Below are positions 14,001 through 53,089 of a stretch of 64,000 bases of DNA, piece after piece. Position 1 is the stretch's first letter. Each line of letters starts with the position of its first letter. Position numbers and translations under genes: made by a program. Below the pieces are notes generated by a model. It saw only the letters and a program-made list of their open reading frames with translations. It was not told the DNA's origin and searched no databases. This DNA comes from Macrostomum lignano (lineage: Eukaryota): assembly GCA_002269645.1 (NCBI GenBank), contig NIVC01000842.1:25837-89836 (forward strand), read 5' to 3'.

Positions 14001-15558
14001 TGCGGCGCTAAAATGAGTGCCTCCGGCGCTAAAATGAGTGCCTGTGGCGCTAAAATGAGTGCCTGCAGCTCTAAAATGAGTTCCTGTGGCGCTAAAATGA
14101 GTGCCTGCGGTGCTAAAATGACTGCCTGCGGCGCTAAAATGAGTACCTGCGGCGCTAAAATGAGTGCCTGCGGCGCTAAAATGAGTGCCTGCGGCGCTAA
14201 AATGAGTGCCTGCGGCGCTAAAATGAGTGCCTCCGGCGCTAAAATGAGTACCTGCGGCGCTAAAATGAGTGCCTGCGGCGCTAAAATGAGTGCCTGCAGC
14301 GCTAAAATGAGTGCCTGCGGCGCTAAAATGAGTGCCTGCAGCTCTAAAATGAGTTCCTGTGGCGCTAAAATGAGTGCCTGCGGTGCTAAAATGACTGCCT
14401 GCGGCGCTAAAATGAGTACCTGCGGCGCTAAAATGAGTGCCTGCGGCGCTAAAATGAGTGCCTGCGGCGCTAAAATGAGTGCCTGCGGCGCTAAAATGAG
14501 TGCCTCCGGCGCTAAAATGAGTACCTGCGGCGCTAAAATGAGTGCCTGCGGCGCTAAAATGAGTGCCTGCAGCGCTAAAATGAGTACCTGCGGCGCTAAA
14601 ATGAGTGCCTGCAGCTCTAAAATGAGTTCCTGTGGCGCTAAAATGAGTGCCTGCGGTGCTAAAATGACTGCCTGCGGCGCTAAAATGAGTACCTGCGGCG
14701 CTAAAATGAGTGCCTGCGGCGCTAAAATGAGTGCCTGCGGCGCTAAAATGAGTACCTGCGGCGCTAAAATGAGTGCCTGCGGCGCTAAAATGAGTGCCTG
14801 CAGCGCTAAAATGAGTGCCTGCGGCGCTAAAATGAGTGCCCTGTGGCGCTAAAATGAGTGCCTGCGGCACTAAAATGAGTACCTGCGGCGCTAAAATGAG
14901 TACCTCCGGCGCTAAAATGAGTGCCTGCGGCGCTAAAATGAGTACCTGCGGCGCTAAAATGAGTACCTCCGGCGCTAAGATGAGTGCCTCCGGCGCTAAA
15001 ATGAGTACCTGCGGCGCTAAAATGAGTACCTGCGGCGCTAAAATGAGTGCCTCCGGTGCTAAAATGACTGCCTGCGGCGCTAAAATGAGTGCCTGTGGCG
15101 CTAAAATGAGTGCCTGTGGCGCTAAAATGAGTGCCTGCGGCGCTAAAATGAGTGCCTGCGGCGCTAAAATGAGTGCCTGCAGCGCTAAAATGAGTGCCTG
15201 CGGCGCTAAAATGAGTGCCCTGTGGCGCTAAAATGAGTGCCTGCGGCACTAAAATGAGTACCTGCGGCGCTAAAATGAGTACCTCCGGCGCTAAAATGAG
15301 TGCCTGCGGCGCTAAAATGAGTACCTGCGGCGCTAAAATGAGTACCTCCGGCGCTAAGATGAGTGCCTCCGGCGCTAAAATGAGTACCTGCGGCGCTAAA
15401 ATGAGTACCTGCGGCGCTAAAATGAGTGCCTCCGGTGCTAAAATGACTGCCTGCGGGATTCTGAAAATAATGGATATGTAAGAATTTCTTCCTGTACATA
15501 TGTACATGTAAAATTCTTGGCTTTGTCCCCCACCATAAAATCCATGGCGACCCCCCTG
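11020..15558. mobile_element. Non-autonomous hAT-like TIR element filled by a satellite
   Basis: Left end CAGGGGCGTCGCCA (11020) and right end TGGCGACCCCCCTG (ends 15558) match 13/14 as an inverted repeat. The flanking 8-mers atctctac and atgtgtac (6/8) fit an aged 8-bp TSD. No transposase is present. Confidence 0.7.
11170..15456. repeat. 21-bp satellite (ctaaaatgagtgcctgcggcg)n with higher-order structure
   Basis: About 204 units; source of the 590-660 aa MSACGAK / GTHFSAA ORFs. Confidence 0.98.
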
Positions 15559-16957: not shown

Positions 16958-18543
16958 TCAATTCTTCTCAGACAGTTGCACCTCAAGCGCCTCCTTGCGC
17001 CGGTCGCTGATGCTGCCGTTCATCTCTAAGCTGACGCTTCTCAGGCCATTTCGGACGGCGCTGTTAGCGATGAGGTCGCAGGCTCGGTCCGACAGCCGGT
17101 TGCCCTCCAGGTCGATGCTAATTAGGCTCAGATTCGAGCCCAGACCCTCTAGCAGAGCAGCCAAGCTCGAATCGGTCAGGTCGCAATAGTCCAGCATCAT
17201 GGATTCGAGTTTTGTGTTGCCACGCAGCGATTTTCCCAAATTGGCCCACGCAGATTCGGACAGGCCCCGACTGCCGGTGAGTTCAAGTCCGGCCAGTGGT
17301 GGATTCTCGGCCAGTAGACCGGCCACCTGTTGAAGGCCTTGGTCTGTCATGCCGGTGTTTCCCAGGTCAATCTGCAATGACAGTAGGCAAGTGTAAATGA
17401 CGGATTTAAAAAAAAATTAATAAATGCGCTAAATTAATGCGCCCAATCATAGTCAACACACTTTATATACTACTTTTTTGTAAGTAGACGATCTCTGTTA
17501 CGAGCTAGAGCTGGCTAAAAAAGTTGTTTTCAGCAAGGAAAACTCAAGTAGAAGGACGCGAAACCAAGGTTTCTTAGAAAATGTTAAGGAGGCTGGTTTT
17601 CGCGGAAAAATACACTACGCAGATAGAAAGTTTTCATGTTTTTCATATCAAAACTGTTATTGCTTTCGATAGGAGGCAGACCCAATGTTCGTATTTTGAT
17701 ATGTTGTGCCTTTCTTATGGCTCTATTGATATTCATGAAGCTTTTCGTTCGGAAAGTTAGGATTCTGACTTAATTTTTTTATTCTCAGTACATTTCCTGT
17801 GCGTTAAAATCATAAAAATGCATGGCACAGCTCGAATCTTTGGTTTTATGGATCTATTTTATCATCTCCTTTACACATATTGTTACATGGTTCATAACAC
17901 CAATGAGCCGAGCTGTGCCATTTTAATAGTTTTCAGGCACAGGACACTTGTAAGTGCACATGTAAGAGCCATAAGGAAGGCACAACATATCAAAAGATGA
18001 CCATTGGGTCTGCCTCCTACGCTCGTATCAAAAGCAATAACAATTTTTGTGCTGAAAAATGAAAACTTTCCATCTCCGCAGTGTATTTTTCTGCGAAAAC
18101 CAGCCTCCTTAACATTTTCGAAGAAACGCTGCAGTTTAAGAGCTTTCTTAGATATCTTGAAAAGACAATAGGACCGTGCTTGTTTGCATGTATCTGCACA
18201 TTATTATTTCGCTACTCACCGTATCGATAGTTGACGAGTTGGTTCGAAATCTGTTTCTCAATCCTTTGACAAGAGCGTAGATACCGTCGTCCCCGATGGC
18301 CACGCTGTGCAAGTTGAGATTAGAAAGCTGAGGCCAACCGGACAGGCGCTCGGCGATGACAGACGCAGTTCGTGAGCTAATGGAGTTGCATGTCAAGTTC
18401 AGGTAGTTCAATTTATCATAGCCTGCAAGAGCCTCGAGCATTCGGATAGCCTGACTGTCCGTCAGCTGGCAGTTGCGCACAGAAACTGACTCCATTTTCT
18501 CAGCTTTCTCGCGTTGATTGAGCTCTTTGAGAAAGAGTTCGAA
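16958..18543 (-). CDS. LRRC73-like ribonuclease-inhibitor-type LRR domain (exons 18543-18220 and 17371-16958)
   Basis: SVSVRNCQLTD, LNYLNLTCNSI, LNLHSVAIGDDG, IDLGNTGMTDQG, MMLDYCDLTD, IDLEGNRLSD. Phase-0 GTGAGT donor at 18219 and CAG acceptor at 17372. Repeat order resembles human LRRC73 as recalled. An alternative in-frame ATG lies at 18606. Confidence 0.85.
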
Positions 18544-21500
18544 CTGCGGGTAATGGTCGGGTAGTTTGAGTATTCTCAATATTCTGCTAGACCACAGAAT
18601 TTGCATTTAACTAAGATCTAAGTTTAAAATATACTCGAATTATTACAGCGAATAATCGTCTTTAACTTGTAAACATGTACAGAGAACTTTTCCAGAATAT
18701 GAGTACGTCATGAACTTAAATATGTTAACCTAATTACTTACTTCTTAATCGTACTTTGGATTATAAACAAACTAAAAAAACGCAAGCATAAAAACTAATA
18801 AATCGTTTTTAAAGCATTAAATTCATAATAAAGTAAAATAAAAAATACTAAAAATATATATAAATATATGTATGCAAGATTTTTAAACGAGAAAAAAATG
18901 GTTCTAGATGTGCAATAAAACATTTGTGTAATATTCTGCAATATGCCGTCGGCTCAACCGGTTAATTCGTCTCAAATTTGTGCTCAAGAAAGCTCCGATC
19001 TGATAAGCTTCAATTTAATCATAGATACGGAAATCAGACTGGCGAGACTGAAAATTCTGTCTATGGTCGACACTCGCTGGCATAGCGGAGTTCAATTTAA
19101 TCCTTGGGGCATTAATTTGATCATTCTAATCATATAACGTTAGATATCCTGTGTTGAAACAAACTTCGCTTCCCTGCAACCAGCTCTGTAGGACAAGGAT
19201 TCGCCACTCTCGTAGCGAATGACCAGCAGGCGGAGTGTCCAGCTCTTCTTGCAGTTGTGGTTGAGTCAGTTGGCTTTTGGCTGCCTTCAAGCAGGCGTGC
19301 GCGTTCTCCACAGGATTGAGGAACGGCGAGTATGGCGGCAATGCACGCTTTGCACCAGATCATTGATGAACTTCTGGAACCTGGATGCCATCATAGTCTG
19401 TCCGAGGATCATATGATGTAAAAGACAAGCTAAAAACAAGTTACGATGACAGTGAAAATGTGCATTGAAAACATAGAATGATCAAATTGATGCCCCCAGG
19501 ATTAAATTGAAATCCGCCATGCCAGCGAGTGTCGACCATAGACAGAAACATTTCAGTCTCGCAAGCCCGACTTCCGTATCTATGATTAAATTGAAAGCTT
19601 TCAGTGCCAACTAGGCCGCAAAAAGGAATAATTGATTCCGTTTTTAGTGGCTCACGTCAACAGAGTAAAGCTTTGACAGTTTGACATCAGTACATCGTTT
19701 CAAGACAAAAAGATAAGTAAAACAATGTGAATAATCTATGGAAAGTCTAAGAAAAAGCATGCTAACGTTCAGATCAAGATGTAAATATATAGGCTTCACT
19801 TGAACGGCAGTGAAGCTTGAAAATGAACAGAGTGCATGCAGTGAAGACTCCACTGAGAAGTGTCAACTCACCGTCTGCGGAATGTCGTTTATAAAATGTG
19901 TGGCGAAGTTTTTGTTAGCTAGTCTACACTTTCCATAGGTCACTACTATGAGTACTATACACTTGTGTACACTGTACGGATGTAGACAGTCAAGCACTTA
20001 TTTGGAAGTGGCCGTCTAGCATTGACTGACCGAGTAAATGGTGCAGTAGTTGACTTTTAATGGAAAAAAAGTAGTGAACAAGGCTATAGAACTTGAAAAA
20101 ATACAATTTAAACTAAGCACTTTAAGTTCAAATACAATAATAAGCTAGACTAGGTTTTCTTTCATGGATTTTTCGAAAACAGATACAAAAACTGATTAAC
20201 TGATAATCGCGGACTCACCTGTTCATCCGATAGCTTTGTATCGTACACAGAGACCCCATTATCTTTGAACAGATCGCGCACTTTTCCAATCCGAGTCTCC
20301 GGAGGCTGAATGTCGTCCGGTTGAACAGATCCGCTACGCATTCGGTTCTGTCTGGGCACAGACTCGGCAGCCTCATCATCTTCCCCGGCTGTTTCTGTGT
20401 CGGACTCGCTGTCGGACGAGTCGCTGTCAGCTTCGCTGGATTCCTCCGCCGTACTGCTGACGTCGTCATCGCTCTGCTCCGATTCGTCAGTGCTGGCTGT
20501 ATCCGACGATTGAGCGGTGGCGGTTGTGCCGCTAGCCGCTGTCGATGGCTTTCCAAAGGATCCTGCATCGCCCGTGGAGGTGGTGGTCGCTCCAGTGGTA
20601 GTTGTGGTGGCAGCGGTGGGTGGTGCAGCCAGCGTCGGCACCGCCTGACGAGCGGACGAAGGTCGCGACTCTTCATGCTGGGACACTTCATCGTCGGTTG
20701 GCGGGGCCAGCAGAATGTGACTATCGCAGTCCCTGGTGAACCACTTGCCGCAGGGAAAGCTGCGCGTCACCCCGCGCTGTTGATCTTCAACCTCCACCTG
20801 GTAAGATTGAGATTTGATGCAGGTTATGGGCACTAATATAATCTTAACACGAGCTTCAACCTGTAAATATGGTACTAATCTGACAGCTGATGATCTAATG
20901 ACGGGATGAAGGAGTGAAGGAGTGAAATAATGAAAATGCTTATTGGAAAATAGGCCACACTGACAAGCATACGCTAATAAAACCATTGACACAGACACGA
21001 AAATCATCACTCTCTCCCAAGTTGTCTCACCCGTGAGAGCAGCCATCTGTCTTGCTCATACTGCACGTCGGTAAAAATTCGTATTTTATTGATGGCACCC
21101 AGGTCGGGAATGCTGATGGAGAACTCGGAAGTACTGAAAATTTTCAAGATTAATAATATGCTTTTACAAATAAGGGTAAGGTAAAACCAAAAAATACAAG
21201 TATTTCGTATTACCTGCCACTCTGAAACTTTCTGCCTTGCTCATTTTTAAACGTCCTGACGTCTGAGTCACCTTGTTCACCGCACAGAACGATAGACACT
21301 GTAGCGTGAGTGCCAGCGTCCTCCGTCGAATCCGTGACAAAACGAATTTTGTAGTCGCATAGGCCTAATAATTGCAGACAAAAATGGTAGACAAATTCTT
21401 TGCAGCCACATTGGTGGGATTTTCTTGCTTCCATTTGCTCGTATGGGCTAAAGTTTTGAGCTTTAACTTTACCTTTCTCCTTAATTGCCTGCTGCTCTTG

Positions 21501-24500
21501 ACGCATACGGTCCAGCTGATCTTCCAGCATCTGTTGCTGCTTCCTCTGCCTTTCCTCTTCCTCTTGCCGGCGCTCCTCTTCTCGCCTTTGAGCAGCAGCA
21601 GCAGCCTCCTCTTCGCGCTTACGGTCTTCCTCTTCGCGCTTACGGTCTTCCTCTTCGCGCTTACGGTCTTCCTCTTCGCGCTTACGCGAAGCCTCCATTT
21701 CCTTCCATCGCTGATTCTCCTCTTCCTCGCTTTCATCTTCCTCGTCGCTGGAAGGCCGTATTTGTAGCGTAGCCGGCTCTTGGTCACGTTCATCCTCCGA
21801 GCCTGCATTTTTGTGGAGCGAATTAGAGTAAAAAATTTTTATTCATCCGTACAGCAATTGGACGTCGTCAACGTCAAGTCGATGTTTTTTTATTAGAGGC
21901 AGGGGGGTTGTGTGCACCCTGGCGCACTTTAAGCGACATAGGCACACAACCGGCGAGAGGCATTACTGCCCATTCCGCCGACTCCCCTGAGTAGGCATAC
22001 AAGCGCGCGGATACGTACGCAAGCACACATTCACACAGGAGTGTACAGCGGCCCTAACTTTATATTATCGTTAGGCATGTACACTTCACTGCGCCTTGGG
22101 GGGTTGGCTCTCAAGGCCATTAATTGCACGAGCAGAGCCAAGCCGAGATTCCAATTCAGCCCCAAATTAATGTGACTGCACTTGGAATCGAGCCTGGGTC
22201 GCTGGCACACCAGAGCAGCTGCGCTACCGCTGGGCTACGGCCCCCGATAACGTCAAGTCGATGTTTCTGATGTTTATCGACGTTCGCTGGCAAATGAGGT
22301 ACTTTTTAATTACGTATAAGGACATTGTGTAGCGTCATCATCCGTCAGCGTAGTTTTAAAAGACCAACTTGCCAGCGACTCTTATCAGCAATATACAAAA
22401 CAACTTGTCTAGACAGTAATTAGAGCGTACCAGAATCCGACTCCTCTGAAAAGCTTGAAATCCTGGTCTGAATGTGACCTTTCTTTTTTCGGTCGGCATC
22501 TGAAAAGAAGCAGTGTAAAAAATTAGTTTACATTCGATTTAATAACTTCGATATTAAATACAGCGCTCATACCAGAGTCTTCGCCTGAGGAACCGCGATC
22601 GCTTCCAGAAACGCGCCTTCGCTTCTCTTCTAAAAGAAGTAAGAAGTATCAATATGCTAGTCAATTGTGTTTTGTATGACCTGAATTTCTAGCTGTTGGT
22701 AAATGATAATAATGACTACACGTGCCCCAATAGGCAGATGTGCAACCGACAGCTCAGCCGCAGCTATTGCGCGGCGCATCTGAAGGCTGCGTACGGCTGT
22801 TCAGTCCAAGGACTGGGGGGTCGCCACACACACCCTCAATTACCCCAGCTAATGCTGGCACCCATTTTACAGCTGGGTGAACTGAAGCAATTTTCTTGCT
22901 CAAGGCACAAATTGTTCGAATGGGATCAGGAATCAAACCACAGACCTTTCAGCAGTGAGTCTGACGCTCTAACCACTAAGGCTACAACCCCCTACCAAAT
23001 TTTGCTAAATAATAGCGTATAAATATTCGTTCGTAATTTACTAACCTTTGCGAACCAAAGTCGATTGGGTGTTTCGAGAATCTTCTGAAAACGAATAGAG
23101 TATAAGTACACAGAGTTACCAATATCATTCTCAAAGAATATACTTGCGAAAGCGCAAGAGGGAAATTTTGATAAAATGTGAAAACTTTGATTTACCAACG
23201 TCTGGGGCATCATCTACTGGCACTTCAGTGACACCTGCAGCGGCTGACTTCTGTTGCTGATCTGTGAACGAAATTAAACCAAAGGAACGAAGAAACGGTG
23301 AGTATTGAAGAGTGACGTGGCAAAAGGAAATGTGATATTTGAGAACTCGAACAAAAAAAAAACAAAATCCCGTTTAGTTTTATAATCAATTCTTGATTCA
23401 AGTTAAATTACGTTTTTGTTTGTTAAAATTGTAATATTCTTACGTATAAATAAATAAATTTCGATGAATATAAATTTTCAAGCGTAAGTTAGTCGTCTGA
23501 ACTCTTGCAAAAGTTTATACAAGTAGTAAGAGTACATATAGATGAAAATGTTGAAAAAATTCTTTTGAAAGTGTTGAAAAGGCTTTTAAAGACAAACAAA
23601 TAGATAGATATAATCAAAAGCTTTATAACAAAGTTTCCGGTGCAAATAAAGTTGTTTTGTGCAGAATAGGCAATTAAACAGTAAAGTGTTTGAATCGTCC
23701 GGTAGATATTTTAGTGTCGAAATACCTTTCTTATTGCCAAGCAGAACTGCCCTGGCGGCGGCAATGTCCTTTTCAAACTCGTCCGCATCATCGTCATCGG
23801 AGTCGAGTTTCGGTCGTGCGACTTTTTTGAATTCGGTTATTTTTAGTTCAAGGTTATTCGGGGCGCTCATTTTAGCTAACTCATTCTAGTAATTAGTAAA
23901 TTACTGATATTTTGCACTGGCTGGAAGTATGCTCCAAGGATTAAATGAAATTGATTCGCACTTTTTCTGCCTCGCCTCCTTTGTTAGTAATAAATCTTGC
24001 AAATATAGTAACGAAAATTAGAAATGGTCTGGAAATAAGGCCGAAGCTGTGGGCTCCCTATCAGCGACGGTTTCCACTGTGTGCAGAAGCCTGCCATTCG
24101 TGGGATGGAATTCGACTGATTTTATACTTATATGTTGTGCCATACGCTAGGCATTACACACAGTAGGAAAAAAATAAAACGGACTCTTTTTGTCGAATAT
24201 TTTTGAAAACAAAACAGAAAATTTCTCACCTGGAGCTGCGTGCTCAGGCGAGCCTTCTATCTTGAAGTTGACAACTTCTTCATCGTCTGAACGATCAGAT
24301 CGGCTGCTACCAGATGCGCGCTGAAAAAGCAATGATTGATGAAGCCATTGTGGAGCTTGAATTTTGCACTTTAATCGAACTGAACAGTAGACAAAGAAAG
24401 CACTGGCAATCTCTTACTCTCTGCCTAGTCAAATCGTCGTCAGCTCTGTCGGGCAGAGCAGCCACCGCGGCGCAACGTTCGGGTCGCTCCTTTTGGATCC

Positions 24501-27500
24501 AACGCTCGAATGGAAACTCCCAGCGTTTGTCGTTCTGCTCAGCGATGACGCGTTCCACGTACCAATCGGTTGAAATGCCGCCCTCGATGTACAACCTGAA
24601 TGTAGTGAGACATAGCAAAGGTTGGAGCTTTAATGTCATAAATAATTAATGTCGTTAAAACTGACAAAACTGATTTTGATTATTTGATGATGGAGAGGTT
24701 TAGATGAGTATAGAACTTGTACTTCCATAGCATCGGGGATTCACCAGCTGAGTCAGGATGCTTCTTGTAACAATTTAACTTCAATGCCGAATATTTATTA
24801 TTGAGATGACATACATTTTTATATAGAACTTCTCCTCGCAGACAGTGGCGCCAACCTAAGAGACAGGGACGCCAACCTAAGAGACAGTGGCGCCAACCTA
24901 AGAGACACTGGCGCCAACCTACGAGCCTAATGTGCAACCGACAGCTCAGCCGCAGCTATTGCGCGGCGCATCTGAAGGCTGCGTAGGGCTTTTCAGTCCA
25001 ATGACTGGGGTTTGACAAACTTACATGTCAAACTATGGGTGTAAAATGGCACCCATTTTACAGCTGGGTGAACTAAAGTAATGCAGAGTTAAGTGACTTG
25101 CTCAAGGATACAAATTGTTCCAAGTGAGTCGAGATACGAACCCCTGACTTTTCACTCGTGAGTCTGACGCTCTGACCACCAGGCTACAAACCCCTTCAAC
25201 AAAACCAAAACAAAAACAAAAACAAAAACAAAAACTTACTCAATTGTCTTCAAATCGCCAAGCTGCTCATCAGCCTGAATATTGAATTTGTCAGCTTGAC
25301 CGCGTCTATACAAACGACCGTCTTTGTTCTGACGGAATTCTTCCAAGGAAATCTGCTCCGAGGTGGCCTCAGTGCCAGCCAGTTGAATTGTTGCTCGGCC
25401 GTCAGTGTCAGCGCCCATGCGATCGCCGGTCTTCACTGTCACGGTGAAGCGGCGTTCGTTGGCATCGACTGCGTCGCTGTCGTCCTCACCCGTAGCGTCT
25501 TTGACTGTTATGAAGAAAAACCGGATTTCCGTTGTAGAGAATACAGGCAAATATTGATGTTAAAGTTAATAACGTTTACCGTTTCTTTGAATGAATAATA
25601 CTTGTATCTAAGCCATGATGCATGGTGATGCAAGACTACTATCATAATGCAGCCACGTCTCAAGTCAAAATTAGCTTGAAACTACTCAAATACGAGAGTA
25701 GAGGCCCATTAGTAGACTAATTTCTGCCCGAATGCCCTTACAGATTGAAATAAATGTTATGGCTGTTTCAGCACAGCAAAAATGTTGTTAAATATATTGT
25801 ATAGGAACTACGAGTACGTTTACTCACCAACAGGAAGGGTCTCAATTGAATTCTTTTCAATCCAGCGACCGGTTTGGAAGCGCCACTCTCTGCCTCCGTT
25901 GGCCACGGTGATGGTTTCGGGCAGCCAGCCGCTGGTCAGGCCACCGCCCTCCGTCTCCAGCCTTGAATTCAGTGGGAAAGTTTCACACATGACATGCTGG
26001 CCTACCAAGAACTTAACTGAATGAGGCAACACGCAAAATATTAGACGTCCAACAACTCACTCTATGGAATGAATTTCGCCCAGGTTGCTGCCAAATCTAG
26101 CTTTAAACTGATCAGTTTGTCCCCGTTCGAAGCAGTCGATTCGGTCGTTTTTCAGCTGCACTCGGTTGGACCTGCGATCCTCGCCAACCAGCGTGGCGAA
26201 TACCCTGGCGTCCGTGCCTGCCATGGCCTGCGACGAGGTTTGAATAGTGACGACGTACACCTCGTCATCGTTTTCACCCGCGATATCTTCTGTAGAAGTA
26301 TGGTTATTCGGGGTGCAATCAATAAGTCCGATTTCAGGAAATTTCAAAACAAAAACAACAGTTTTATTGTGTTAAAGATTACAAAGGTCCTTCAGGATAA
26401 CGGCTAATGTTGGAGTTATAATAAAGTCAATTAAAAACATCCATATACGCTCGTATTTATTTTAATATTTATATTTAGGCTAGCAAATATTGCTTTCACT
26501 CATCACTTACCAACGGTGAAAGTCTCGCACTCGTTCTTCTCAATCCAGCGACCAGCTGGGAATGTCCATTGCTGGTCACCGCGCGAGACAGTGATCGACT
26601 CAGGACGCCAGCTGGAGCCGATGCCTCCGTCCTCCAGATGAAGTCTTTATAACGTTCAGGTGTTCGGGTAGGGGTGAATCTTGGTTAGTTGAAAAAATTA
26701 AACGTCATAAATAAATCCCTGTCGCTGAATATGACATTTTCTAGCTGACTGATTGTAAGCGGTGCTTACTATTGCTTAACTCCCTTATTTTCCGACCAAG
26801 CAACTGCTTACCATAATACTTTTTATTTAAATTTCCACTGTCATTGATTCCATTCCATTTCCATTGACTACATTTTTCAAAGCAGAGTTTATCAATTTGG
26901 TCTTAACCAACCTCGCTTCAGATGGAGTTGAATTCACTTCCAAGGTCAAATGTTTCTATACGAATAATATAATAATCTACCAGCATTCTACTAAAACAAA
27001 CAAATAAACGAATCATAGTCTATGGTTAAAACATCATTCTCACGTGGGACAATTGGAAGCGTTTCTAGAGGGAACGATTCGTCAAATTTGTAATCTATCT
27101 TTCTGCTACTTTATCGGTCTGATTATTAAAAAAATGAACACACTCACCTGACTGCAGTAAGCTCTCCTAGATCCTCGCGCGCTTTCACCGTAAATTCGTT
27201 GGTAGCACCTCGCTCGAATGTAGTGGCGCCGTCGTATTGCTTTAATGGAAACTTTTTCGAAGTAGCCGAACTTCCGATAAGTTCAATGAAGGCAGGGGCC
27301 TCGGTGCCGGATCCGATCTCATCAAAGGTCGCTATTATCACTTGGTATTCCACCCTTTCTCTCCCAATACTGCTGCTTCTGCTGCTCTTACTGCTGACGC
27401 TAGCGCCGCGGCTTCGGCTGCTACTAGAAGATGAGGAGTCCTTGTCTACAAGTGCAGGTTGAAGTATTGAATTTGTAAGCATTAGTAGTCAAGACAGTGA

Positions 27501-30500
27501 ATATCAATGTCTCAATGATCTGCCTCTGGATTCTAACAAATTTGTATTGTATCCGAGACGAATACGAGTATATCCTCATATAATTTAATTATACGTTCCT
27601 TTACATATATGACTCGTACACACTCAAAGGATGCTCGTGAGCACCCTGGCGCAACGTCTTGCGAGATCTCGTAGCACAACAACCAGAGCTGAGGCATTTC
27701 TGCCCATTCTGCTACAAGCGCACCGATACCGTTCTCAGGCACGCACTCACACACACGCTCACACAGAGTGTACAACGGCCCTGGCTTTTTAACTGTCAGA
27801 TATTTACACTCTGTGACTTGGGCCCTCATGGTTAGTAAGCGCACGACAACCTTCTCGAATGTTCGAGCGCAAGCCTTAAATTAATGAGGCCACGCTCTGA
27901 ATCGAACCAGGGGTCGTAACGTCAGACGCTTTTTTGCTAAGCAACTCAGCCTCTCATCCTAAAAGAAAGTTCTCTGAATTCAGGAAGCTTATGCTTCGCA
28001 TCATGAAAGTGAAATAAGTTCCCTCAAAGACTATCCGCAGGGTGAACGTATCTCTGGACTCGCAGGACCTTCTCGCAAAGATTATCGAGTCGCAAAATTG
28101 GATTAATTTCTGTCTCTGCATAGAAACTACGCAAATAAATGCCGTAAAGAAGCATAAAAAGACGTGCAGTCTACGACATGCGCCATGATGTGGATGAAGA
28201 CGGCTATAGTACTCAAATCTAACCCTCGATCAGAATAGATCAGTTAGTAAAGCAGCTGGGAATAGGGGAGACGATGATCTCAGTTTTCTTTCTTAACCCT
28301 CTCTCATATGCGTTGCATGCTCTCTCTCTTTGCTTGTAGGACCATCTGCTATATTCACCGCAGTTGTTGTCCGACATTAGGGACCTCTCATCGAGGCTTC
28401 TATTGGAGCATCCCTGAGACTATTAACTGGGTCAAACAGAAAGAGAAACGGGGATGGAGACGCGCACACACAGAAACAGACGACAGAGCTCAGCGAGAGA
28501 ATTATGGAGAAGCATGATCTCGCATCGGAGTATTTGCGGACGGGTTTGTCCGGCCAGAGATCCTTTTTTGCTTGATTATGAGCAGACTAAATTTCTTTTA
28601 CAATTTAGGGACTGTAAGGCCTCCAAATCGACTGCTACAATGTTTAAAGCTAATCAGTAGAATAGTCAGCACTCACCGGATCGCTTGCCTCGTTTGTCAT
28701 GGTCCGACTCGTCCTGGAAGTCGTCGTCGTAGGCTGAAATGCAACATTGGACGGTTAGTTTAGTGGTCTGTTGTAAATTTAGTTGAACAGAAGAAGACGA
28801 AATGGTGGCATTATGATTGCGACTGTCATTGCTGCACTGGCTGGTTGAATTGTGACTAGCATGGAATAGAGCCGCCTGGTGCACCAGCTGCCTCACTAAA
28901 GCCAGTTTCTGGCAAGGCAGCATGCTTGCTACGCGGTCCAAGTATTTCGCGATATAAACAAATGGATCAAAAATCGAATAAATATGGCCATGCGAGCATG
29001 TGAGAGATTCATAGGCCATTTGATTGGTTAGCATTGGCTGGATGATCGGAAATTACTTTACCATTGGTTGTTTATCATAGGGATGTCGACATCGCTTATT
29101 GGTTGCGTTGGAAACAACTGATCAGTTTGTGAGCTCAGCGAGTCATTCAGCTCGCTACGAGTATTGCAGTGTTAATTTATAAAAATTTGCTTCGATTTCG
29201 CTAATAAATAGACAGGTAGTAGGACAGCTATAAAAATTAAATGAAACTATAAAGTGTAATTATCAAATAGATAGACAGACAGCCACAACATCGAGAAAGA
29301 GAGGAAATCCAAAAGACTCTAGCGAGCTTTCTCGAATTGTCGATGATTTACTACCTGACGCAGGTGGCTTTCTGTCAGCCATGGCCGATGATGGACGAGG
29401 TCCAGATTTAGCCGAAACTGGCCTGCTCGATTTCGACATCGAGCTGTGACGACTTCGTCGACTACGATGACTGGCTGAGCCAGATGATGAAGAAGCAACT
29501 GTTGCTGCTTCTGGAAGCAGTTGGAAGTTGTCCAAGCGGGATGTCAGTTGTTTTGTTTGTTAGGTAGGTGCCAGCGAGGAGGCAGGAAGTCATGCTAGCT
29601 CGTATCCCATAAGTACAGATAGGTACGCAGGCACACGTTCATACAGGATGCACAGCGTTCCTGGTTTAGCCAAGCATGCACACAATTTGACAATATGAGG
29701 GCCCTCAAAGACGCGAATCATACAACGGGCCAATTTTTTGTGAACTTTTGACTCTTTTATTCCTCGATCTAAGCTCGGTTCTATCTTCAAATCGTATTAT
29801 AAGATATTCCTGGAAAATGACGCTGGCTTGCTAAGGATAGCAGATTTTGTATGCAGATGTTCTATGCATATGAACAGGTGCTCATATGCATCGAGAGATG
29901 CACATTTCTCATCCGCTCTCAGCCCTCTAGATTGTTCGAAATATTCGCAATATGATAGCTAATATATTCTTCCTCAGAGGGAATCCATATATGCCTCTGA
30001 TTGTAGAATTATTTCCACGAAGCAAATAAGACAGCAATGGACTCGGCACGCCTGGGTGACTGATCTAACAATTATTCATTGCGTAAATCATCTTCATTGT
30101 GGCAGCGTGAAATGAATTACTAGCAAATTTACGATCGCAATAATGTAGATTTCTATTCAATTTGATAGATGAAATGGCGCAGTGAATTAAGTAAATCAAG
30201 TGACATTTTGTAATTCCAATTGTCGCATGCTAGATACTATACTCATAGTTGGATCAACGAGATTCTAATGCTCAATTTAATTTCAAGAGTATTTTGTGAA
30301 CAATTTTTGACGCGACAATTTCCATAGGTGAAATAGTGAGAACTGCGTTTTTCTAACTGCCGAGTTCCCACCTTCGACGGCTGCATTGTTGTTATCTGAT
30401 TGCTCGACAACGTTCAAGTTGTTGTTGTCGTTAGTTTTGCTCTTTGTATCGCTGTCTGTATCGCTGCCTGTATCAGTGTCGTCCAACGGTATTTCCACTG

Positions 30501-33500
30501 GTTCCTGTAAAGTGTCCTTTTCAGCCTCCTCCTCCGTTGTCTGCTTTGGCATTGCTGTATCCTCTTGTTCTACAAGCGGCACCTCTTCTTCCTTGCGTGC
30601 CGGCGCACTTGCTGACGGCTCACTATCCTGCGGATGCTCTGAATCCGGCACAGCTTGACCGTCAGGTCGAGGGTTCAACGATGACTCCGGTTCCTTTGGG
30701 TCTCTGTCGGCTTGCGTCGAATCTTCGGCTTCTTTGTTTGCAATATTTTTAGTGTAGAACAAAGTTATTTTTATGTAGTTACTGTCCCTGATCTTAAACT
30801 CTTGTTACCCTACTGAGAGTAGATAATACTGTGTGGTGGTTATTTAGCCAATTTTTAGCCTAGTTACCAGTAAATGCTAGTGGTTTTTACTTGACTTTAA
30901 ATTTTTTAAACCACGACTCGTATTAAGATTTGGATTTGTATGTTATTGAGGGTTTTAAGGAGGCTCAGCCTCTGTCGTTCGCACTTTGTTTCGTAGATCC
31001 TTACGAGCTAATTAGTGACTCACTTTTCTGCGGTTTCCTTCGACCAGAAGAAGTGCTCTCTTTCTTGGCCTTTTCTTTCTTGCCGCGTCCCTCCTTCAGC
31101 TGTTCCTCTACCTGGCATCTGAATTGTAATGTGTTTTAGTTTTGAATTATAAAACATTACAAAACAAGCGTCTCAGTTACAATGACGCAAGTAGCTACAC
31201 TACATTAGTTTTAAAACAGTAAAGTAATTGAAGCACTTCAAGCACCCACCTGTAGCACGGCGCCGCCTCGGACACGCTGACAAAACCGAAGTGGCCGGTC
31301 TTCGAGCCGAGTCTCACGCCAGTCCTGTGCTTGTACTCGCAGCAGGCGCTCACCCTCGAGTCCATCACGCCGTCGATGTAAAGAGACAACGAGAACGGGT
31401 AGCCACGATGGCGCCGACTCACGAATGTGAAGTCCTCTGAAAATTGTAGTTGTCGATTAGTTTGTTAACGGACCACTACAGGGGCGATCCTCAGTAGAAG
31501 TTGTTAGGAGGATATGCCAATGTTTTGTCTCGAATTTCGCCTTTCACTAGTTAATCATTAACTCACCGCCAGGCTTCACCAGTCCGTAGAACACCCGGAG
31601 CGTGTTGCCGCCAGAGTGCTGCTGCATCACCGTCACCTCTTGGCCGTCATGGCCAGGCCCGTCGTGCGGTATCTTCAGCGCCGGACCGTAATAGTGCAGC
31701 GTCACCTTGCAGAGGCTCTGGTAGGAGGCCTGCTTGTCGAGCGCTGGCTCGGCCCTATGCAGCCGGAGTCTTCCAACCCTCGACTTGCCACCCCTCTTTT
31801 TCTTTCGCTTCTCGTCTTCAACTTCGCCTTCGTCGCTCAGATCTTCGACGTCGTCGTCATCAGAGTCCCGACGAGCCGCCGCCGCTCCCGGTCTTGCAGC
31901 CGATTTTGGCCGGCCGCTGCGCGAACGATTCCGACGTCCCGGCGATGGCGAATTACCGGTGCTACGTCGACGAGGCTGCGAGGAGGCCCGATGGGAGCTG
32001 AGATTCGAACCACCGCCACCGCCTCGAGCTTCGTTGCGACGCATTGATTCTAGAATGTTGGCGTATTCCTGCAGCGCCACGCTGTCCAAAGTGAGCAGAT
32101 GCTTCGAATCGATCTCTGCCCGAGGAAATTGGCGACGAAGTCGTCGGCGCTGCACGGTGTCCGGGTGCGGCGGAAGGCCCGACGGTTCCGGCTGAAGTTG
32201 GGAAAGTTTTCGAGGTTCGAGGAGGCCTTGTTATAGTTATCAGTTAACCAGGCGACTTCACACGCTGATTTCACGTATGCTTGCATTGTAAGCGTTATTA
32301 GTACTCAGCTTATCCTCGCACAAACGCAAACTAAATTACCTCTTCGTCTCCGTCGCCCTCCTCGGCATCGCCGCCAATCCGATTGGGTCGCTGCTTTCTA
32401 CGGCGAATGCCAGACGACGTGGCAGCTCCTGGGTCTAGCAGAGGCATCAGGTCTTCGTCCCCGCGGCGGTTGCGTTCGTTCTGTTTGGAAATATTTTAGT
32501 AGAAAGCATAGATAAACGTCATAAACGTCATAGGAGAAACAAAAATATCGAAGTCCTGTGGAGCTTCTTAACTGACGAGTGACAAAAATCAATTGACAGA
32601 TTGTCTTTGGATTACGAATGAAAATGAGTGACAAGGTGATAAAAAATCAAACTCAAAACGTTTAATTTTCAACGGGATGACTGTGCTGACTGACCGCTAT
32701 CCCTCAAATCAAAGTAAATTGACGAAAAGCAGTAAATAAATACAATGGTGAATTTAAAAACTGAAATTGACTGTAGAATCTTCTGCAGTACCAAACGCCT
32801 CGGCAGACGCTCTTGATCTCCGCTAATTAGCGAAGACACATCGCTGGATGCGGCGCTACTACGCTGCGTGTCAAGCAGCAACTGTGGCAGAGGTGGCGAG
32901 TTTTGACGTCGTTGCTGACGCAGCTGGAGACGCCGTCCGTCGTGATGACCGGCCGAGAGCGTCGAGTTGGCTGCGGCTTGGGCCGTAACCTGCGCCAAGC
33001 TGGTGGGCGTCAGGTGCGCCAGTAGACCGCCGCGATCTTCTGGCCTAGCCTGACCCTTTGTTGCGGTGTGCGACCCCGGGAATAGAATTAGAGTTTGTAA
33101 TAGAGGTATATAGCAGTAACGGACCAGTATATCAACCCGACGTCAGGGACGTCGGCCCACTTTTTCAACATCTTTCGACTTCGCTGGAAAATGGATACTT
33201 TCCACTGCACAGACCTGTACGCATGACGTCATCACCTATCATTTTCAGTTGATTTGTAACAGAAGATTGAAGACGATATGACGAAGTGCAGTCACGTTAA
33301 CTTGGGGCTAAATTGGAATCTGGGCTTGGTTCTGGTCGTGAAATTAACGCCCTTGAGGGCCAACCGGCCCAAGGCACAGTAAAGAGTACATGCCTAACGA
33401 TAAATAAAGTTAGGGCCGCTGTACACTCCTGTGTGAGGGTGTGCCGGTACGCGTATGTGCCTGCTCAGGGACGTCGGCGGAATGGGCAGTAATGCCTGTC

Positions 33501-34044
33501 ACCGGTTGTATGACAATGTCGCTTAAAGTGCATCAGGGCGCCACACAGCCCTCTGCCTCTAATAAAGAAGTATGCCTGACGCTATAACTACTACTGTCTT
33601 GAAAATTAACTTTTGAAAAGTAGTGCTTTATAACACTGCGTCCTGTTTCTGTCTCTAATCTCACCTTGATTCGCCTGACGTGCTCCATTTTGGCAATCTC
33701 CTCCAGTTTGCGTCGAATATCGACTTGACGTTTGCGCTCGAGATCAAGCGACTTGTGCACAATGGCCTGGGCAAGCATGTCCCTCACGTGGCGTTTGTGC
33801 TCTTTTCGGGCCATCTTGAGCCTGTACACTGGCTCGGGCACGACTTCGCCAGTTCGAGTGATCTGGTTGGTTGAGTAGTTGTGTGGGTAGCAAAAATATA
33901 GCGTTTAAAAACTATTTCGTTTAAAATCTTAAAATAAATCCAAGCCATACCAAGCCAGCCTTGACCAGGTGACGCCACTTTGCTCTGTTATTAAAGTAGC
34001 CAGCCAGGTGCTCATCCTTCAGGCTGTTGTACTGGGCCAAAGGC
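16958..34044 (-). CDS. Predicted 27-exon gene: DUF4590 (ERICH3-like), low-complexity linker, PLAT x3, acidic/coiled coil, PLAT, acidic linker, RI-type LRR; about 1,900 aa; first (ATG) exon not located
   Basis: Phase-consistent exons: 34044-33951, 33862-33665, 33049-32792, 32480-32340, 32191-31567, 31436-31250, 31118-31024, 30731-30372, 29510-29355, 28733-28677, 27445-27148, 26644-26511, 26289-26061, 25961-25828, 25504-25240, 24595-24418, 24320-24230, 23875-23726, 23261-23196, 22629-22573, 22499-22431, 21802-21473, 21364-21214, 21133-21031, 20797-20219, 18543-18220, 17371-16958 (TGA). Linker exon boundaries are less certain than domain exons. Confidence 0.65.
17570..18127. mobile_element. Foldback/MITE-like element in the LRR intron
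   Basis: Arms 17570-17687 and 18002-18127 are imperfect inverted repeats, with a perfect inner 18-mer TAGGAGGCAGACCCAATG / CATTGGGTCTGCCTCCTA. Confidence 0.7.
19000..19606 (-). mobile_element. Internally deleted IS630/Tc1-like transposon
   Basis: About 130-bp TIRs (19000-19130, 19473-19606). The interior encodes LPPYSPFLNPVENAHACLKAA, the DDE C-terminal LPPYSP.LNPIE motif. Confidence 0.85.
20700..27345 (-). CDS. Four PLAT/LH2 domains within the large gene
   Basis: YQVIIAT..GSGTEA..FERG..LGEL..WRPESI..GRWI; YVVTIQT..AGTDA..FERGQTDQF..LGEI; FTVTVKTGDRMGADTD..GQADKF..LGDL..WYVERV..FPFERW; YKIRFVT..AGTHA..DLG..WLLSRVEV..FPCGKW. Confidence 0.9.
21888..22248 (-). mobile_element. tRNA-derived SINE, type A, full length with TSD
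   Basis: Head GGGGGCCGTAGCCCAGCGG (A box) and GGCTCGATTCC (B box); tail ccctgcctctaataaaa. An 18-bp TSD aacgtcaagtcgatgttt sits at 21870-21887 and 22249-22266. Other copies occur in the window. Confidence 0.9.
22705..22992 (-). mobile_element. tRNA-derived CORE-like SINE, type B, copy 1
   Basis: Head GGGGGTTGTAGCCTTAGTGG..GGTTTGATTCC, then gtgccttgagcaag..cagttcacccagctgtaaaatggg (CORE-like). Second copy at 24929. Confidence 0.8.
24841..24921. repeat. Short 21-bp tandem repeat x4 (gacagtggcgccaacctaaga)
   Basis: Directly visible; abuts the SINE B tail. Confidence 0.9.
24929..25194 (-). mobile_element. tRNA-derived CORE-like SINE, type B, copy 2
   Basis: Homologous to 22705-22992. Contains ccttgagcaagtcacttaactct...ctgtaaaatggg, close to the CORE consensus. 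Confidence 0.8.
27610..27951 (-). mobile_element. tRNA-derived SINE, type C (different head, body related to type A)
   Basis: Head GGCTGAGTTGCTTAGC..GGTTCGATTC. Shares caccctggcgca, ggcatt.ctgcccattc and cacacag.agtgtaca.cggccct with type A. Confidence 0.65.
29023..29115 (-). promoter_or_regulatory. Candidate internal promoter: four CCAAT boxes plus an X-box
   Basis: ATTGG at 29023, 29033, 29063 and 29098; GTTGCGTTGGAAAC at 29102-29115. The ATG at 29034 opens a frame continuous with exon 28733-28677. Confidence 0.4.
31024..34044 (-). CDS. ERICH3-like N-terminal region including DUF4590
   Basis: PLAQYNSLKDEHLAGYFNN..RHLVKAGL|ITRTGEV..RDMLAQAIVHKSLDLER; QQHSGGNTLRVF; FVSRRHRGYPFSLSLYIDG..SACCEYKHRTGVRLG..GHFGFVSV..APCYRC. 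These closely match ERICH3/C1orf173 motifs as recalled. Confidence 0.88.
33285..33566 (+). mobile_element. SINE type A copy, 5'-truncated and diverged
   Basis: aagtgcagtcac..ttggggct..agggccgctgtacactcctgtgtg..gcctctaataaa. Confidence 0.85.
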
Positions 34045-35703
34045 CTAAAATATGTAAGATTTTTGTTTATAAGAAACGAATTCGTTTATTAAAAACGATT
34101 ATTACGATTACAATCAGTGAACAAAAACTAAAAAGAAAAAGAAACAAATGACTCTCATTAAAGCCTACTAAAAGGAAAAAAATTAGGAACACAATTTCCG
34201 AATAAACCCTCTAAAAATCGACAGTATATTTATACTGTTTAATTTCGGGATAGTTATTTAACGTAATGCAATGTAATGTAATTTCTTTATCCACCCAGAA
34301 TGTCAGTTAATTTTAGTTGTATTAAAAAACGTATTGAAAAAGAAATAAAGCAAAGGGTAGTCATAGATGAATTGGGCAATGATAAGTTAGATCGAAAGCA
34401 AGCTTGCTTGCAATCTGGGAAATGCTTGCATGCTGTCAGGGGTTGCTTGCTGTGTAGGGATGTTTTCTTTTAGAGGAAATGTCTGTTGTTTTTTCGTTGT
34501 CTATTTGTTACTTGTAAATAACAAAGATTCTATCCAGATGTCCCCCATTGGGGGGCGAAGATTGCTAGTAAAATTCTATAAATTAGACTGGACATTTTAA
34601 TTGATACATTTCAGAAGAGTAATTAGCTTCAAAAGAAAGCCAAATCTTAATTAAAAAGTTTTGGTATCGTTGCAACACGACCTGTACTATTAAAAAGGGT
34701 AATTTCGTACAGGCTATCGGCCATAAAGTTGATTAAGTCCAGTTCAACATTTGTCATGTACGAGTGTATACGCTCGTAAATAGCTAATAGCAGTATAATT
34801 TGTAACAAAAACATAACAAGAAGCAGATTATATTATACAATTAAGGACAATCGGTTTATAATAAAACAATATAAATTTCCCTATGCTATAAAACGATTTT
34901 TTTAATATCGATAAAGTATGATCATACGATTAAGTGCGAATTTATCGATCTGTCGGTAAAAAAATGCACTCCAGGCTCCAGCTAACCTATGCATGTCTAC
35001 TCACTTCATACATGCAAGTAAAAAGTGCCTAAATGGTAAAAAGTGCCTACGTAATTTTTATAGACAGCTAACTTAAAACATAAGCTGAATTAGAGTAATT
35101 CAGTGATAGACAATGAAGTTCCTGAAGTTACCAATTTGTTTGTAATTGTAAAAAAAACTTGTGGTAATTTACCACTGGTAAATACTGTAAATATGGCAAT
35201 TATAATTGAACTTAAAGTCGAGCTTTTACTGTAAATATTTAATTGAAACAAAAAGGGAGAACCGATACTTTTAAATGCACAAACATACCCAGTTTCTGGT
35301 TTTGCCATGTCAATTGTGTCAAAAAGATTGAAATCTAGCACTTTTGCTGAAACAAAAATGAAAGAAAAAAGAGAAATTAAAAAGTTGAAAAATGTCTTAG
35401 ATATTCACTTATAAACAGATTTTTCTGTTTAATTTTGCAACTTAATCAAGTTTTTATCAGTGCAATTTGCAAAATATTATTAAATTTATGTTATTTAGGC
35501 GAAACTTTATTATTTAATGCAACAATCTAGATGTTTTTTGTTTTAACGTTTGTTGAGCTACTATTTTTAAATTTTGCTAAATAAACTGGATCGCATTTCC
35601 AACTGTGCGCTCTCTCTTACCAGAAGTTGTGTTTCTTTTACCCTGTAAAGAGTGACGGTGCTGTATTTACCTATAAAGTTACCCAAAACACGTAGCGTAA
35701 TAT

Positions 35704-40930: not shown

Positions 40931-41006
40931 ACCTAAACCGAGACTAATAGCCTCAAACCCCCGGATTTGCTCCCTAATTTGCATGCATGCCAGCCTAGCA
41001 GCAACA

Positions 41007-53042: not shown

Positions 53043-53089
<47 letters not shown>

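Follow-up and report, generated by a model that had tools for sequence, protein, structure and literature searches.

An ERICH3-like gene of Macrostomum lignano with four PLAT domains in its linker and an LRRC73-type LRR tail

The window analysed here, a 64,000-nucleotide stretch of Macrostomum lignano DNA (contig NIVC01000842.1), carries an ERICH3-like gene on the minus strand that runs from an ATG at 35308 to a TGA stop at 16960-16958 and has 26 coding exons for 1745 amino acids. All introns have AG/GT borders, and the exons join in matching phases into a single open frame of 1745 codons whose only stop is the terminal one. A preliminary description of the sequence had chained 27 exons and placed the gene within 16958-34044. 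Its borders, phases and single frame hold, but this interval contains 25 of the 26 coding exons, and the ATG belongs to one more exon, at 35308-35289, as given by GenBank PAA93423.1 together with the window sequence. This exon 1 (35289-35308) encodes MAKPET plus two bases of a Gly codon and reads ATGGCAAAACCAGAAACTGG/gtatgt; it fits the PAA93423.1 N-terminus, MAKPETGPLAQ, and is conserved in the paralogous locus L001. Position 34044 is an acceptor bearing the third base of the Gly codon, not the start of the gene.

The conserved ERICH3 N-terminal region starts in exon 2 (33951-34044; PLAQYNSLKDEHLAGYFNN...AGL), which was placed by tblastn and AG/GT borders and is 56-63% identical to the ERICH3-like proteins of oyster, Actinia and Trichoplax (tblastn). 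It continues in exon 3 (33665-33862; …YRLKMARKEHKRHVRDMLAQAIVHKSLDLERKRQ…; tblastn, phmmer), where the oyster protein is 73% identical (tblastn). Exon 4 (32340-32480; AG/GT borders) encodes a basic and acidic stretch with a conserved GDEDLMPLL motif common to Actinia (KKGDEDILPLL) and oyster (RKGDEEILPYL). Exon 5 (31567-32191; tblastn, Pfam) holds an Arg/Ser-rich linker and the first half of DUF4590 (PF15257). The core of the domain lies in exon 6 (31250-31436; FVSRRHRGYPFSL…CCEYKH…PCY; Pfam, tblastn), and exon 7 (31024-31118, donor at 31024) carries its end (R-CQV) and a Lys-rich linker. Exon 6 alone matches PF15257 with an E-value of 2.3e-29 (102 bits; Pfam) and is 61-66% identical to Actinia, oyster and Trichoplax (tblastn); the motif PCYRCQ, spanning exons 6 and 7, also occurs in Actinia. 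The whole domain scores 131.1 bits against a Pfam gathering score of 27, spans residues 335-431 of the 1745-aa protein (328-424 in the model without MAKPETG) and is predicted to form a seven-stranded beta-sandwich. Only one paper of the searchable literature mentions DUF4590.

A long Glu/Asp/Ser-rich low-complexity region follows DUF4590, as it does in the oyster, Actinia and Trichoplax proteins. Exons 8 (30372-30731, a 100% match to the start of UniProt A0A1I8JD35) and 9 (28677-28733; YDDDFQDESDHDKRGKRS) encode acidic linker. Exons 9 to 23 were placed by mapping A0A1I8JD35, which maps exactly, spliced, onto 18 exons with AG/GT borders. Neither deposited model (UniProt, GenBank) includes the candidate exon at 29510-29355, which is in frame. 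The four PLAT domains (PF01477) score 234 bits in total (Pfam) and make up about a quarter of the protein. Exon 10 (27148-27445; phase 1 in, phase 2 out; Pfam) encodes Ser-rich linker and the N-terminal half of PLAT1, and exon 11 (26511-26644; 134 nt, phase-1 end) the C-terminal half. PLAT2 is divided between exons 12 (26061-26289, N-terminal half; Pfam PLAT, E 5e-09) and 13 (25828-25961, C-terminal half; 134 nt, phase-1 end), and PLAT3 between exons 14 (25240-25504, N-terminal half; Pfam PLAT) and 15 (24418-24595, C-terminal half). Exon 16 (24230-24320) is linker, as are four micro-exons that each run from phase 1 to phase 1 (exon 17, 23196-23261; exon 18, 23046-23084; exon 19, 22573-22629; exon 20, 22431-22499), and exon 21 (21473-21802) is Glu/Arg-rich with REEEDRK repeats. 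Parts 1 and 2 of PLAT4 occupy exons 22 (21214-21364; Pfam PLAT) and 23 (21031-21133).

Exon 24 (20219-20797) reads through 193 codons with no stop, from the last strands of PLAT4 (its part 3) through a Thr/Ser/Asp/Glu-rich linker into the LRR N-terminal cap. This cap consists of the first beta-strand, GVSVY, and the beginning of helix 1 (DEQ), and it can be aligned both to ERICH3-like proteins and to LRRC73. The exon ends at 20219 in the top-scoring donor of the gene (GAACAG/gtgagt) and joins position 18543 in phase 0, the protein reading ...VYDTKLSDEQ/FELFLKELNQ across the junction. Exon 25 (18220-18543; tblastn, alignment, model) supplies the rest of helix 1 and approximately the next four LRR strand-helix units, and exon 26 (16958-17371; tblastn, model) approximately the last five, the C-terminal cap and the stop, with 33-40% identity to oyster, Actinia and Trichoplax (tblastn). 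The LRR module (residues ~1474-1745, its cap sharing an exon with PLAT4) has LRR_6-type repeats (Pfam) and is of the ribonuclease-inhibitor type, with nine strand-helix units; its AlphaFold model has a pLDDT of 91 and a pTM of 0.89. In this model the first strand covers residues 15-19 and the helix residues 25-35, and the 20219/18543 junction falls after residue 27, completing the first LRR unit. The preliminary description had read this junction correctly in position, phase and effect, had both other junctions it named (31024/30731 and 28677/27445) exact, and had rightly seen no stop after PLAT4, where the exon runs on into the LRR fold.

A0A1I8JD35 is 100% identical to exons 30729-18340 and crosses the PLAT4-LRR junction. 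It and A0A1I8H339, both named 'PLAT domain-containing protein', are fragments that cover the PLAT domains and the start of the LRR and lack DUF4590 and most of the LRR. The preliminary description knew of no protein with the complete architecture, yet GenBank PAA93423.1 (BOX15_Mlig002034g1, M. lignano, 1758 aa, 2017) has exactly that. This entry, named 'hypothetical protein, partial', comes from a paralogous locus, is 97.2% identical to the present gene across the 1738 aa compared and has the same 26 exons; transferring the exon map to locus L001 yields it exactly. RNA-seq and de novo transcripts underlie the annotation it comes from (PMC5730564). Transcript support for the present gene is indirect, consisting of this transcript-derived model of a 97%-identical paralog and an earlier, partial model in agreement with the window. 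In the paralogous locus all 26 exons are conserved, splice sites included. Substitutions between the copies amount to 1.2% in exons versus 2.7% in introns, and indels are in-frame only in exons (12, 21 and 3 nt, the 21-nt indel being a repeat-number difference in exon 21) and many in introns. The pN/pS ratio between the copies, calculated from 62 differences only, was 0.42 overall, 0.59 for PLAT1-3, 0 for PLAT4 and 0.16 for the LRR. The exon chain is real as one gene, with DUF4590, four PLAT domains and the LRR module. The gene sequence itself is not new, having been in GenBank since 2017, and the gene is not mentioned in the searchable literature. A common presence of the architecture in databases, which the preliminary description regarded as removing its novelty, holds in part.

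ERICH3-like proteins match the flatworm gene at both ends. The N-terminal ~100 aa scored 70-132 bits by phmmer against 26 ERICH3 and ERICH3-like proteins of vertebrates and invertebrates, with the matches at residues ~8-107 in most of the full-length ones, and the conserved pattern …YNSL.D.HL.GYF… / …ARKEHK.H..D.LA.AI… is present at the protein start. Over this region, identity to non-vertebrate ERICH3-like proteins is 51-73% (tblastn). Self-matches aside, the DUF4590 part finds its best matches exclusively in ERICH3 or ERICH3-like proteins, and the LRR module aligns end to end, including both caps, with the C-termini of eight ERICH3-like proteins (62-89 bits). The set includes Crassostrea virginica isoform X9, Actinia tenebrosa, Acropora muricata, Xenia sp., Clytia hemisphaerica and Trichoplax sp. 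H2, and no ERICH3 from another flatworm was among the relatives retrieved. These relatives carry DUF4590 and LRR_6 (Pfam), and the order shared by the non-vertebrate proteins is N-terminal ~100 aa, DUF4590, acidic/Ser-rich linker and C-terminal ribonuclease-inhibitor-type LRR; the linkers of those retrieved are purely low-complexity and contain no PLAT domains. DUF4590 and LRR in one protein is the ordinary non-vertebrate ERICH3-like architecture, and the only unusual part of the present gene is the four PLAT domains within the linker. Vertebrate ERICH3 (C1orf173; fish, frog, bat) shares the conserved N-terminal region and DUF4590 with the flatworm gene but has neither the LRR module (14 proteins) nor PLAT domains. 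We consider it probable that the locus is the M. lignano counterpart of ERICH3, with an LRRC73-type tail and with four PLAT domains added in the linker.

The LRR module is the counterpart of vertebrate LRRC73, which stands alone as a protein, whereas the M. lignano module forms the C-terminal end of a protein of 1745 aa. The likeness to LRRC73 pointed out in the preliminary description was confirmed when hhalign compared the module profile with human LRRC73 (NP_001012992.1, 316 aa; probability 99.85%, E 1.5e-30, 248 columns). Residues 4-256 of the human protein are collinear with the whole module, and the alignment covers both the N-cap and the C-terminal 'NSISPE…' cap. Against an ERICH3-LRR profile, LRRC73 gave one collinear domain at 148 bits, and the same profile found no match in 14 vertebrate ERICH3 proteins. 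LRRC73 scored 56-110 bits against the eight ERICH3-like tails (78-110 for six of them), compared to at most 57 bits against LRR proteins of the PDB (ribonuclease inhibitor, NLRP). The M. lignano LRR, at 50 bits, is further from LRRC73 than most of the eight other tails are. Because LRRC73 aligns along the whole module, which is missing from the 14 vertebrate ERICH3 proteins, it appears to be a tail that came off an ancestral ERICH3. Since non-vertebrates join DUF4590 and LRR, the separate ERICH3 and LRRC73 of vertebrates would be the derived state. No link between ERICH3 and LRRC73 was found in the searchable literature, where the two names never share a paper.

The PLAT domains differ among themselves. 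PLAT1 and PLAT2 (42% identity) match each other best, for PLAT2 by a narrow margin (90.1 versus 89.4 bits for an outside domain), and the best match of PLAT3, as of PLAT1, is another domain of the same protein. PLAT1-3 are closer to one another than to any domain from outside and share exon phases, whereas PLAT4 is distinct in sequence and exon structure and best matches sea urchin LOXHD1 repeats (35-37% identity). The best outside matches of single domains are 32-40% identical. For the PLAT segment as a whole, the best matches are LOXHD1-type multi-PLAT proteins (sea urchin XP_030851151.1, lamprey, Mastigamoeba, Pelomyxa; 26-35% identity), which likewise have tandem PLAT beta-sandwich domains but consist of nearly nothing else (up to 21 matched PLAT stretches each), with no DUF4590 or LRR. 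LOXHD1 itself has 15 PLAT repeats. Domain comparison showed no close orthology of the flatworm domains to LOXHD1-type repeats. The only other retrieved relative that joins DUF4590 to PLAT is a protein of the choanoflagellate Salpingoeca kvevrii (EP00050_P015164, 3378 aa, a transcriptome ORF), with DUF4590 (99.5 bits) and 15 PLAT domains but neither the ERICH3 N-terminal region nor an LRR module. Its PLAT domains rank 21 among the non-self matches of the flatworm domains (26% identity) and are no closer than LOXHD1-like ones, so the joining of DUF4590 to PLAT likely arose independently in the two lineages.

A lineage-specific fusion of ERICH3, a LOXHD1-type PLAT gene and LRRC73 into a novel architecture, as the preliminary description proposed, would account for the one frame shared by three domain types, for the separate ERICH3 and LRRC73 proteins of vertebrates and for the lack of PLAT in every other ERICH3-like protein retrieved. 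However, DUF4590 and LRR are already joined, collinearly and in the same order, in molluscs, cnidarians and a placozoan, which leaves at most one lineage-specific event, the acquisition of PLAT, and the full architecture had already been deposited as PAA93423.1. The LRR module is the LRRC73 counterpart within the architecture of non-vertebrate ERICH3-like proteins, and the gene is therefore not a new ERICH3-LRRC73 fusion. What stands of the proposal is one gene with DUF4590, four PLAT domains and LRR; we regard three genes fused in this lineage as very unlikely. We give equally little weight to an artefact in which neighbouring or nested genes were mis-joined (for example, a PLAT gene in an ERICH3 intron) or a polycistron was read through, even though M. 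lignano transcriptional units often hold several trans-spliced genes (PMC5730564). A polycistron would show stops and starts between genes, whereas one unbroken frame in matching phases crosses all borders here. Exon 20797-20219 alone encodes the end of PLAT4 and the LRR cap, exon 27445-27148 links the linker to PLAT1, and two loci show the same structure, as do two model sets deposited independently (UniProt, GenBank).

Alternatively, the gene may be real but its PLAT-containing form only one isoform, if the main product skips PLAT1-3 or intron retention yields a short form that stops after PLAT4. Loss of PLAT1 or of PLAT2 would be frame-neutral because each exon pair starts and ends in phase 1, and reading through the donor at 20219 leads to a stop after 18 codons, with an ATTAAA at 20061. 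On the other hand, neither deposited model lacks any of the four PLAT domains, skipping of PLAT4 would lose the LRR cap, the PLAT exons change less than introns with no frame damage in either copy, and no donor of the gene outscores that at 20219. This reading appears unlikely. Splice variants, such as ones that skip PLAT1 or PLAT2 or use the candidate exon 29510-29355, may exist.

Under the preferred reading, an ERICH3 counterpart with PLAT domains added, the gene would have kept the architecture of non-vertebrate animals, namely N-terminal region, DUF4590, an acidic/Ser-rich and probably disordered linker, and C-terminal LRR. Vertebrates would have split ERICH3 and LRRC73 apart, or ERICH3 would have lost its LRR module. 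A two-exon module with borders in phase 1 would have been duplicated in tandem to give PLAT1-3. PLAT domains attach to membranes or partners in lipoxygenases, polycystin-1 and LOXHD1, and M. lignano is a densely ciliated worm. We infer that the protein works in its cilia: human ERICH3 is a ciliary protein (PMC6848114), and staining for LRRC73 marks motile cilia (bioRxiv 10.1101/2025.03.18.643967). The core ERICH3 function there would come from DUF4590 and the N-terminal region, the LRR module could serve as a protein-docking surface, and the added PLAT domains might tether the protein at further points to membrane lipids or to partners. A more speculative reading, which we think has only a small chance of being right, is that DUF4590, PLAT arrays and the LRRC73-type LRR are parts of one old ciliary assembly, in which ERICH3 and LRRC73, as halves of an ancestral protein, still bind each other in vertebrate cilia and a PLAT-repeat protein (LOXHD1 or a relative) is the third partner. 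It would draw on the two cases of DUF4590 joined to PLAT, in the flatworm (four domains) and in S. kvevrii (15).

The M. lignano entries named 'hypothetical protein' or 'PLAT domain-containing protein' can be renamed ERICH3-like. The Rosetta-stone idea of the preliminary description, that co-occurrence in one protein hints at cooperation, survives in changed form: for ERICH3 and LRRC73 it now rests on many invertebrate proteins, and for DUF4590 and PLAT on the flatworm and one choanoflagellate. In vertebrates, both ERICH3 and LRRC73 are cilia proteins about which little is understood. The LRRC73-type module forms the C-terminus of ERICH3 in oysters, cnidarians, Trichoplax and the flatworm, which leads to the hypothesis that vertebrate LRRC73 binds ERICH3 or acts in the same step. 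As a weaker hint, the flatworm PLAT insertion and the choanoflagellate DUF4590-PLAT protein may place PLAT-repeat proteins in the same functional neighbourhood.

Between 16000 and 35000, translation of the minus strand from stop to stop gave a series of open segments whose Pfam content comprised DUF4590, four PLAT domains and ribonuclease-inhibitor (RI)-type leucine-rich repeats (LRRs). Exons of the 5' part were modeled on oyster, Actinia and Trichoplax homologues, and the remainder on UniProt A0A1I8JD35 (1114 aa, "PLAT domain-containing protein"), an M. lignano protein that a homology search, queried with the concatenated domain segments, found to be 100% identical to the window. The resulting model has 25 exons in 34044–16958, with canonical splice sites and one stop, at the end. 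Exact spliced mapping of A0A1I8JD35 on the window produced 18 exons from 30729 to 18340, with AG/GT at every intron, covering all four PLAT domains and then crossing 20219/18543 into the LRR. In the same protein cluster is GenBank PAA93423.1 (BOX15_Mlig002034g1; 1758 aa; "hypothetical protein, partial"), whose N-terminus reads …MAKPETGPLAQYNSL. The counterpart of its start is a minus-strand ATG exon at 35308–35289 (ATGGCAAAACCAGAAACTGG followed by the donor gtatgt), and this match brings the gene to 26 coding exons and 1745 codons. The exon chain of the preliminary description was largely right; its count of 27 exons and its 5' end were off, the gene starting at the ATG at 35308, 1.26 kb outside the range it had assigned.

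Two open reading frames tried as exons, at 33142–32672 (between 33665 and 32230) and at 23885–23589 (after PLAT3), were dropped in favor of the exons given by the homologues and A0A1I8JD35. A trans-spliced ATG at the acceptor at 34044 was out of frame, and needless given the ATG exon at 35308. Intron 8 holds a candidate exon at 29355–29510 on the minus strand (156 nt, in frame, Ser/Arg-rich, phase 1 to 1) with a good acceptor and donor. Neither deposited model includes this segment, which may be a cassette exon and may partly explain why the preliminary description counted more exons.

PAA93423.1 is encoded at a second M. lignano locus (NIVC01000029.1:1308431-1333796) that is collinear with the window and keeps all 26 exons with their AG/GT borders. 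A coding sequence built there from the window exon map reproduced PAA93423.1 exactly, and the window model was 97.2% identical to it over all 1738 residues compared. Exons of the two copies differed by 1.2%, with indels that were all in-frame (12, 21 and 3 nt), and introns by 2.7%, with numerous indels. The pN/pS ratio between the copies was 0.42 overall, 0.59 for PLAT1–3, 0 for PLAT4 and 0.16 for the LRR (62 differences in all). The genome paper (PMC5730564) states that the annotation in GenBank relied on RNA-seq assemblies together with de novo transcripts, and that transcripts were split at sites with trans-splicing or poly(A) evidence. Since two loci and two independently deposited model sets agree, the deposited models point to a single continuous coding sequence. 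The architecture, which had been described as unknown in any protein, was already deposited as PAA93423.1, unnamed and undiscussed; a literature search on the locus tag found nothing.

The junction on which a PLAT–LRR fusion depends, 20219/18543, was the best solution of a simple donor/acceptor scan, is in phase 0, and has a donor that outscores every other donor in the gene. The preliminary description had named it as the key junction, and both the scan and the mapping of A0A1I8JD35 bear this out. We examined a gene boundary at this point against an AlphaFold model of the LRR module made from an alignment of ERICH3-type C-terminal LRR modules (pLDDT 91, pTM 0.89, nine strand-helix units). Exon 20797–20219 codes for the last PLAT4 strands, the linker, the first LRR strand (GVSVY) and the start of helix 1 (three residues, DEQ), and the exon from 18543 opens with the remainder of helix 1 (FELFLKEL). 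Because the LRR cap shares an exon with the end of PLAT4 and the predicted helix 1 straddles the junction, a gene boundary there is not plausible on this model. Read-through of the donor at 20219 reaches a stop after 18 codons, with ATTAAA at 20061, so a minor truncated isoform ending past 20219 may exist beside the continuous product. Within intron 24 (1675 bp, separating the PLAT4/linker exon from the first LRR exon), a minus-strand ORF at 19133–19390 carries the motif LPPYSPFLNPVENAH, typical of Tc1/mariner transposases; as this Tc1-like ORF has no Pfam match, it probably represents decayed remains.

Apart from self matches, the DUF4590 part hit ERICH3 and "glutamate-rich protein 3-like" proteins in the homology search, and Pfam placed both DUF4590 and LRR_6 in ERICH3-like proteins of oyster, Actinia, Acropora, Xenia, Clytia and Trichoplax. 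Read side by side, these proteins and the window gene follow a common plan: a conserved N-terminal region of ~100 residues (in exon 3, 73% identity to oyster; 70–132 bits against 26 ERICH3 proteins, including those of vertebrates), DUF4590 (131 bits, Pfam), a long acidic or Ser-rich linker, and a C-terminal LRR module (62–89 bits to eight ERICH3-like proteins, aligning end to end with both caps). By these sequence comparisons, DUF4590 plus LRR is the ordinary non-vertebrate ERICH3 architecture. The preliminary description had proposed a novel fusion of three genes, ERICH3, a multi-PLAT gene and LRRC73; as DUF4590 and LRR are already joined in oyster, cnidarians and Trichoplax, their combination was not made by fusion in the flatworm lineage.

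The PLAT domains are what is unusual in this gene; no other ERICH3-like protein recovered carries one. With A0A1I8JD35 as query, 1.84 billion representative proteins yielded no relative above 36% identity outside M. lignano, and the best matches were multi-PLAT proteins of LOXHD1-like type from sea urchin, lamprey, Mastigamoeba and unknown organisms. Each of PLAT1–3 spans two exons in phases 1-2-1, except that PLAT3 ends in phase 0; the linker around them is built of phase-1 exons. The second exon is 134 nt in both PLAT1 and PLAT2, which are reciprocal best matches (42% identity); PLAT3 matches PLAT1 best (35%). The exon phases, equal exon lengths and mutual matches fit a module with phase 1 at both borders that was duplicated in tandem inside this linker. 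PLAT4 is split over three exons, and its best matches are sea urchin LOXHD1 repeats. DUF4590 occurred in one of the 149 best PLAT matches, a transcriptome ORF of 3378 aa from the choanoflagellate Salpingoeca kvevrii (EP00050_P015164) with DUF4590 at 110–203 (99.5 bits), then 15 PLAT domains and no LRR. This was the sole other DUF4590–PLAT combination found. Its PLAT domains show no special closeness to those of the flatworm, which suggests that the two combinations probably arose independently.

The relationship of the LRR module to LRRC73 was decided by local comparison of the human sequence, confirmed by exact look-up as NP_001012992.1. Profile comparison aligned LRRC73 with the ERICH3-type LRR alignment over 248 columns (probability 99.85%, E = 1.5e-30), residues 4–256 pairing with profile positions 18–268. 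Mammalian LRRC73 proteins matched the profile as one collinear domain (144–149 bits), whereas generic LRR proteins drew their scores from several overlapping partial matches; none of 14 vertebrate ERICH3 proteins matched. LRRC73 scored 78–110 bits against six of eight ERICH3-like tails, 73 bits against Trichoplax (in three fragments) and 56 bits against Clytia. Among PDB proteins, ribonuclease inhibitor and NLRP proteins reached no more than 57 bits with it, and no close relative of LRRC73 has a solved structure there. These values uphold the earlier "LRRC73-like" assignment. In a database search with the alignment profile, metagenomic proteins with generic RI-type LRRs crowded the results, with neither the input proteins nor LRRC73 among the matches listed. 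From these sequence scores, vertebrate LRRC73 likely arose as the C-terminal module split off from an ancestral ERICH3. The searchable library contained no paper that names both ERICH3 and LRRC73. The 90%-identity cluster of human LRRC73 includes several rodent proteins of 347–406 aa named "protein YIPF3", one of them the cluster representative.

Head to head with the ERICH3-like gene lies a plus-strand PCI-domain gene (35704–40012) resembling proteasome subunit PSMD8/Rpn12. Its first ORF begins ~400 bp from the ERICH3 ATG at 35308, and this order and spacing suggest a shared bidirectional promoter; the same neighbor (Pfam CSN8_PSD8_EIF3K) flanks the second locus. Farther along the plus strand, a ribosomal protein L4 (uL4) gene at 40983–43871 (Pfam Ribosomal_L4, Ribos_L4_asso_C) has its two coding parts separated by a 28-bp minisatellite of ~47 copies (41489–42818) that yields long spurious ORFs. 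A gene at 57973–61699, also on the plus strand, resembles neurabin/spinophilin: an exon encoding a PDZ_5 domain (78 bits in Pfam) precedes a long ORF that has a coiled-coil-like stretch, a SAM-like C-terminal segment and no Pfam match. Twelve or more minisatellite arrays, with unit lengths of 19–47 bp, flank the ERICH3-like gene (1593–15456, 40441–42818, 48316–60264) and account for strong GC-skew blocks and long repetitive ORFs. The largest (21-bp unit, 204 copies, 11172–15456) lies immediately past the ERICH3 stop and recurs at the second locus.

DUF4590 was predicted to form a seven-stranded beta-sandwich (pLDDT 77). Comparison of this fold with the PDB gave no match at E ≤ 0.001 and a weak likeness to C2-like beta-sandwiches (TM ≤ 0.5), which gives no basis for assigning a function; no PDB chain contains DUF4590. 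In lipoxygenases, polycystin-1 and LOXHD1, PLAT domains mediate membrane or protein-partner binding; LRR modules of the RI type serve as surfaces for protein binding. Both ERICH3 (PMC6848114) and LRRC73 (bioRxiv 10.1101/2025.03.18.643967) have been reported in cilia. By analogy, our best inference is that the flatworm protein would be an ERICH3-type ciliary scaffold, to which the gain of PLAT domains in the worm would have added extra membrane- or partner-binding modules. What is new is the lineage-specific insertion of PLAT domains into ERICH3 and, more widely, that vertebrate LRRC73 would correspond to the ancestral ERICH3 tail.
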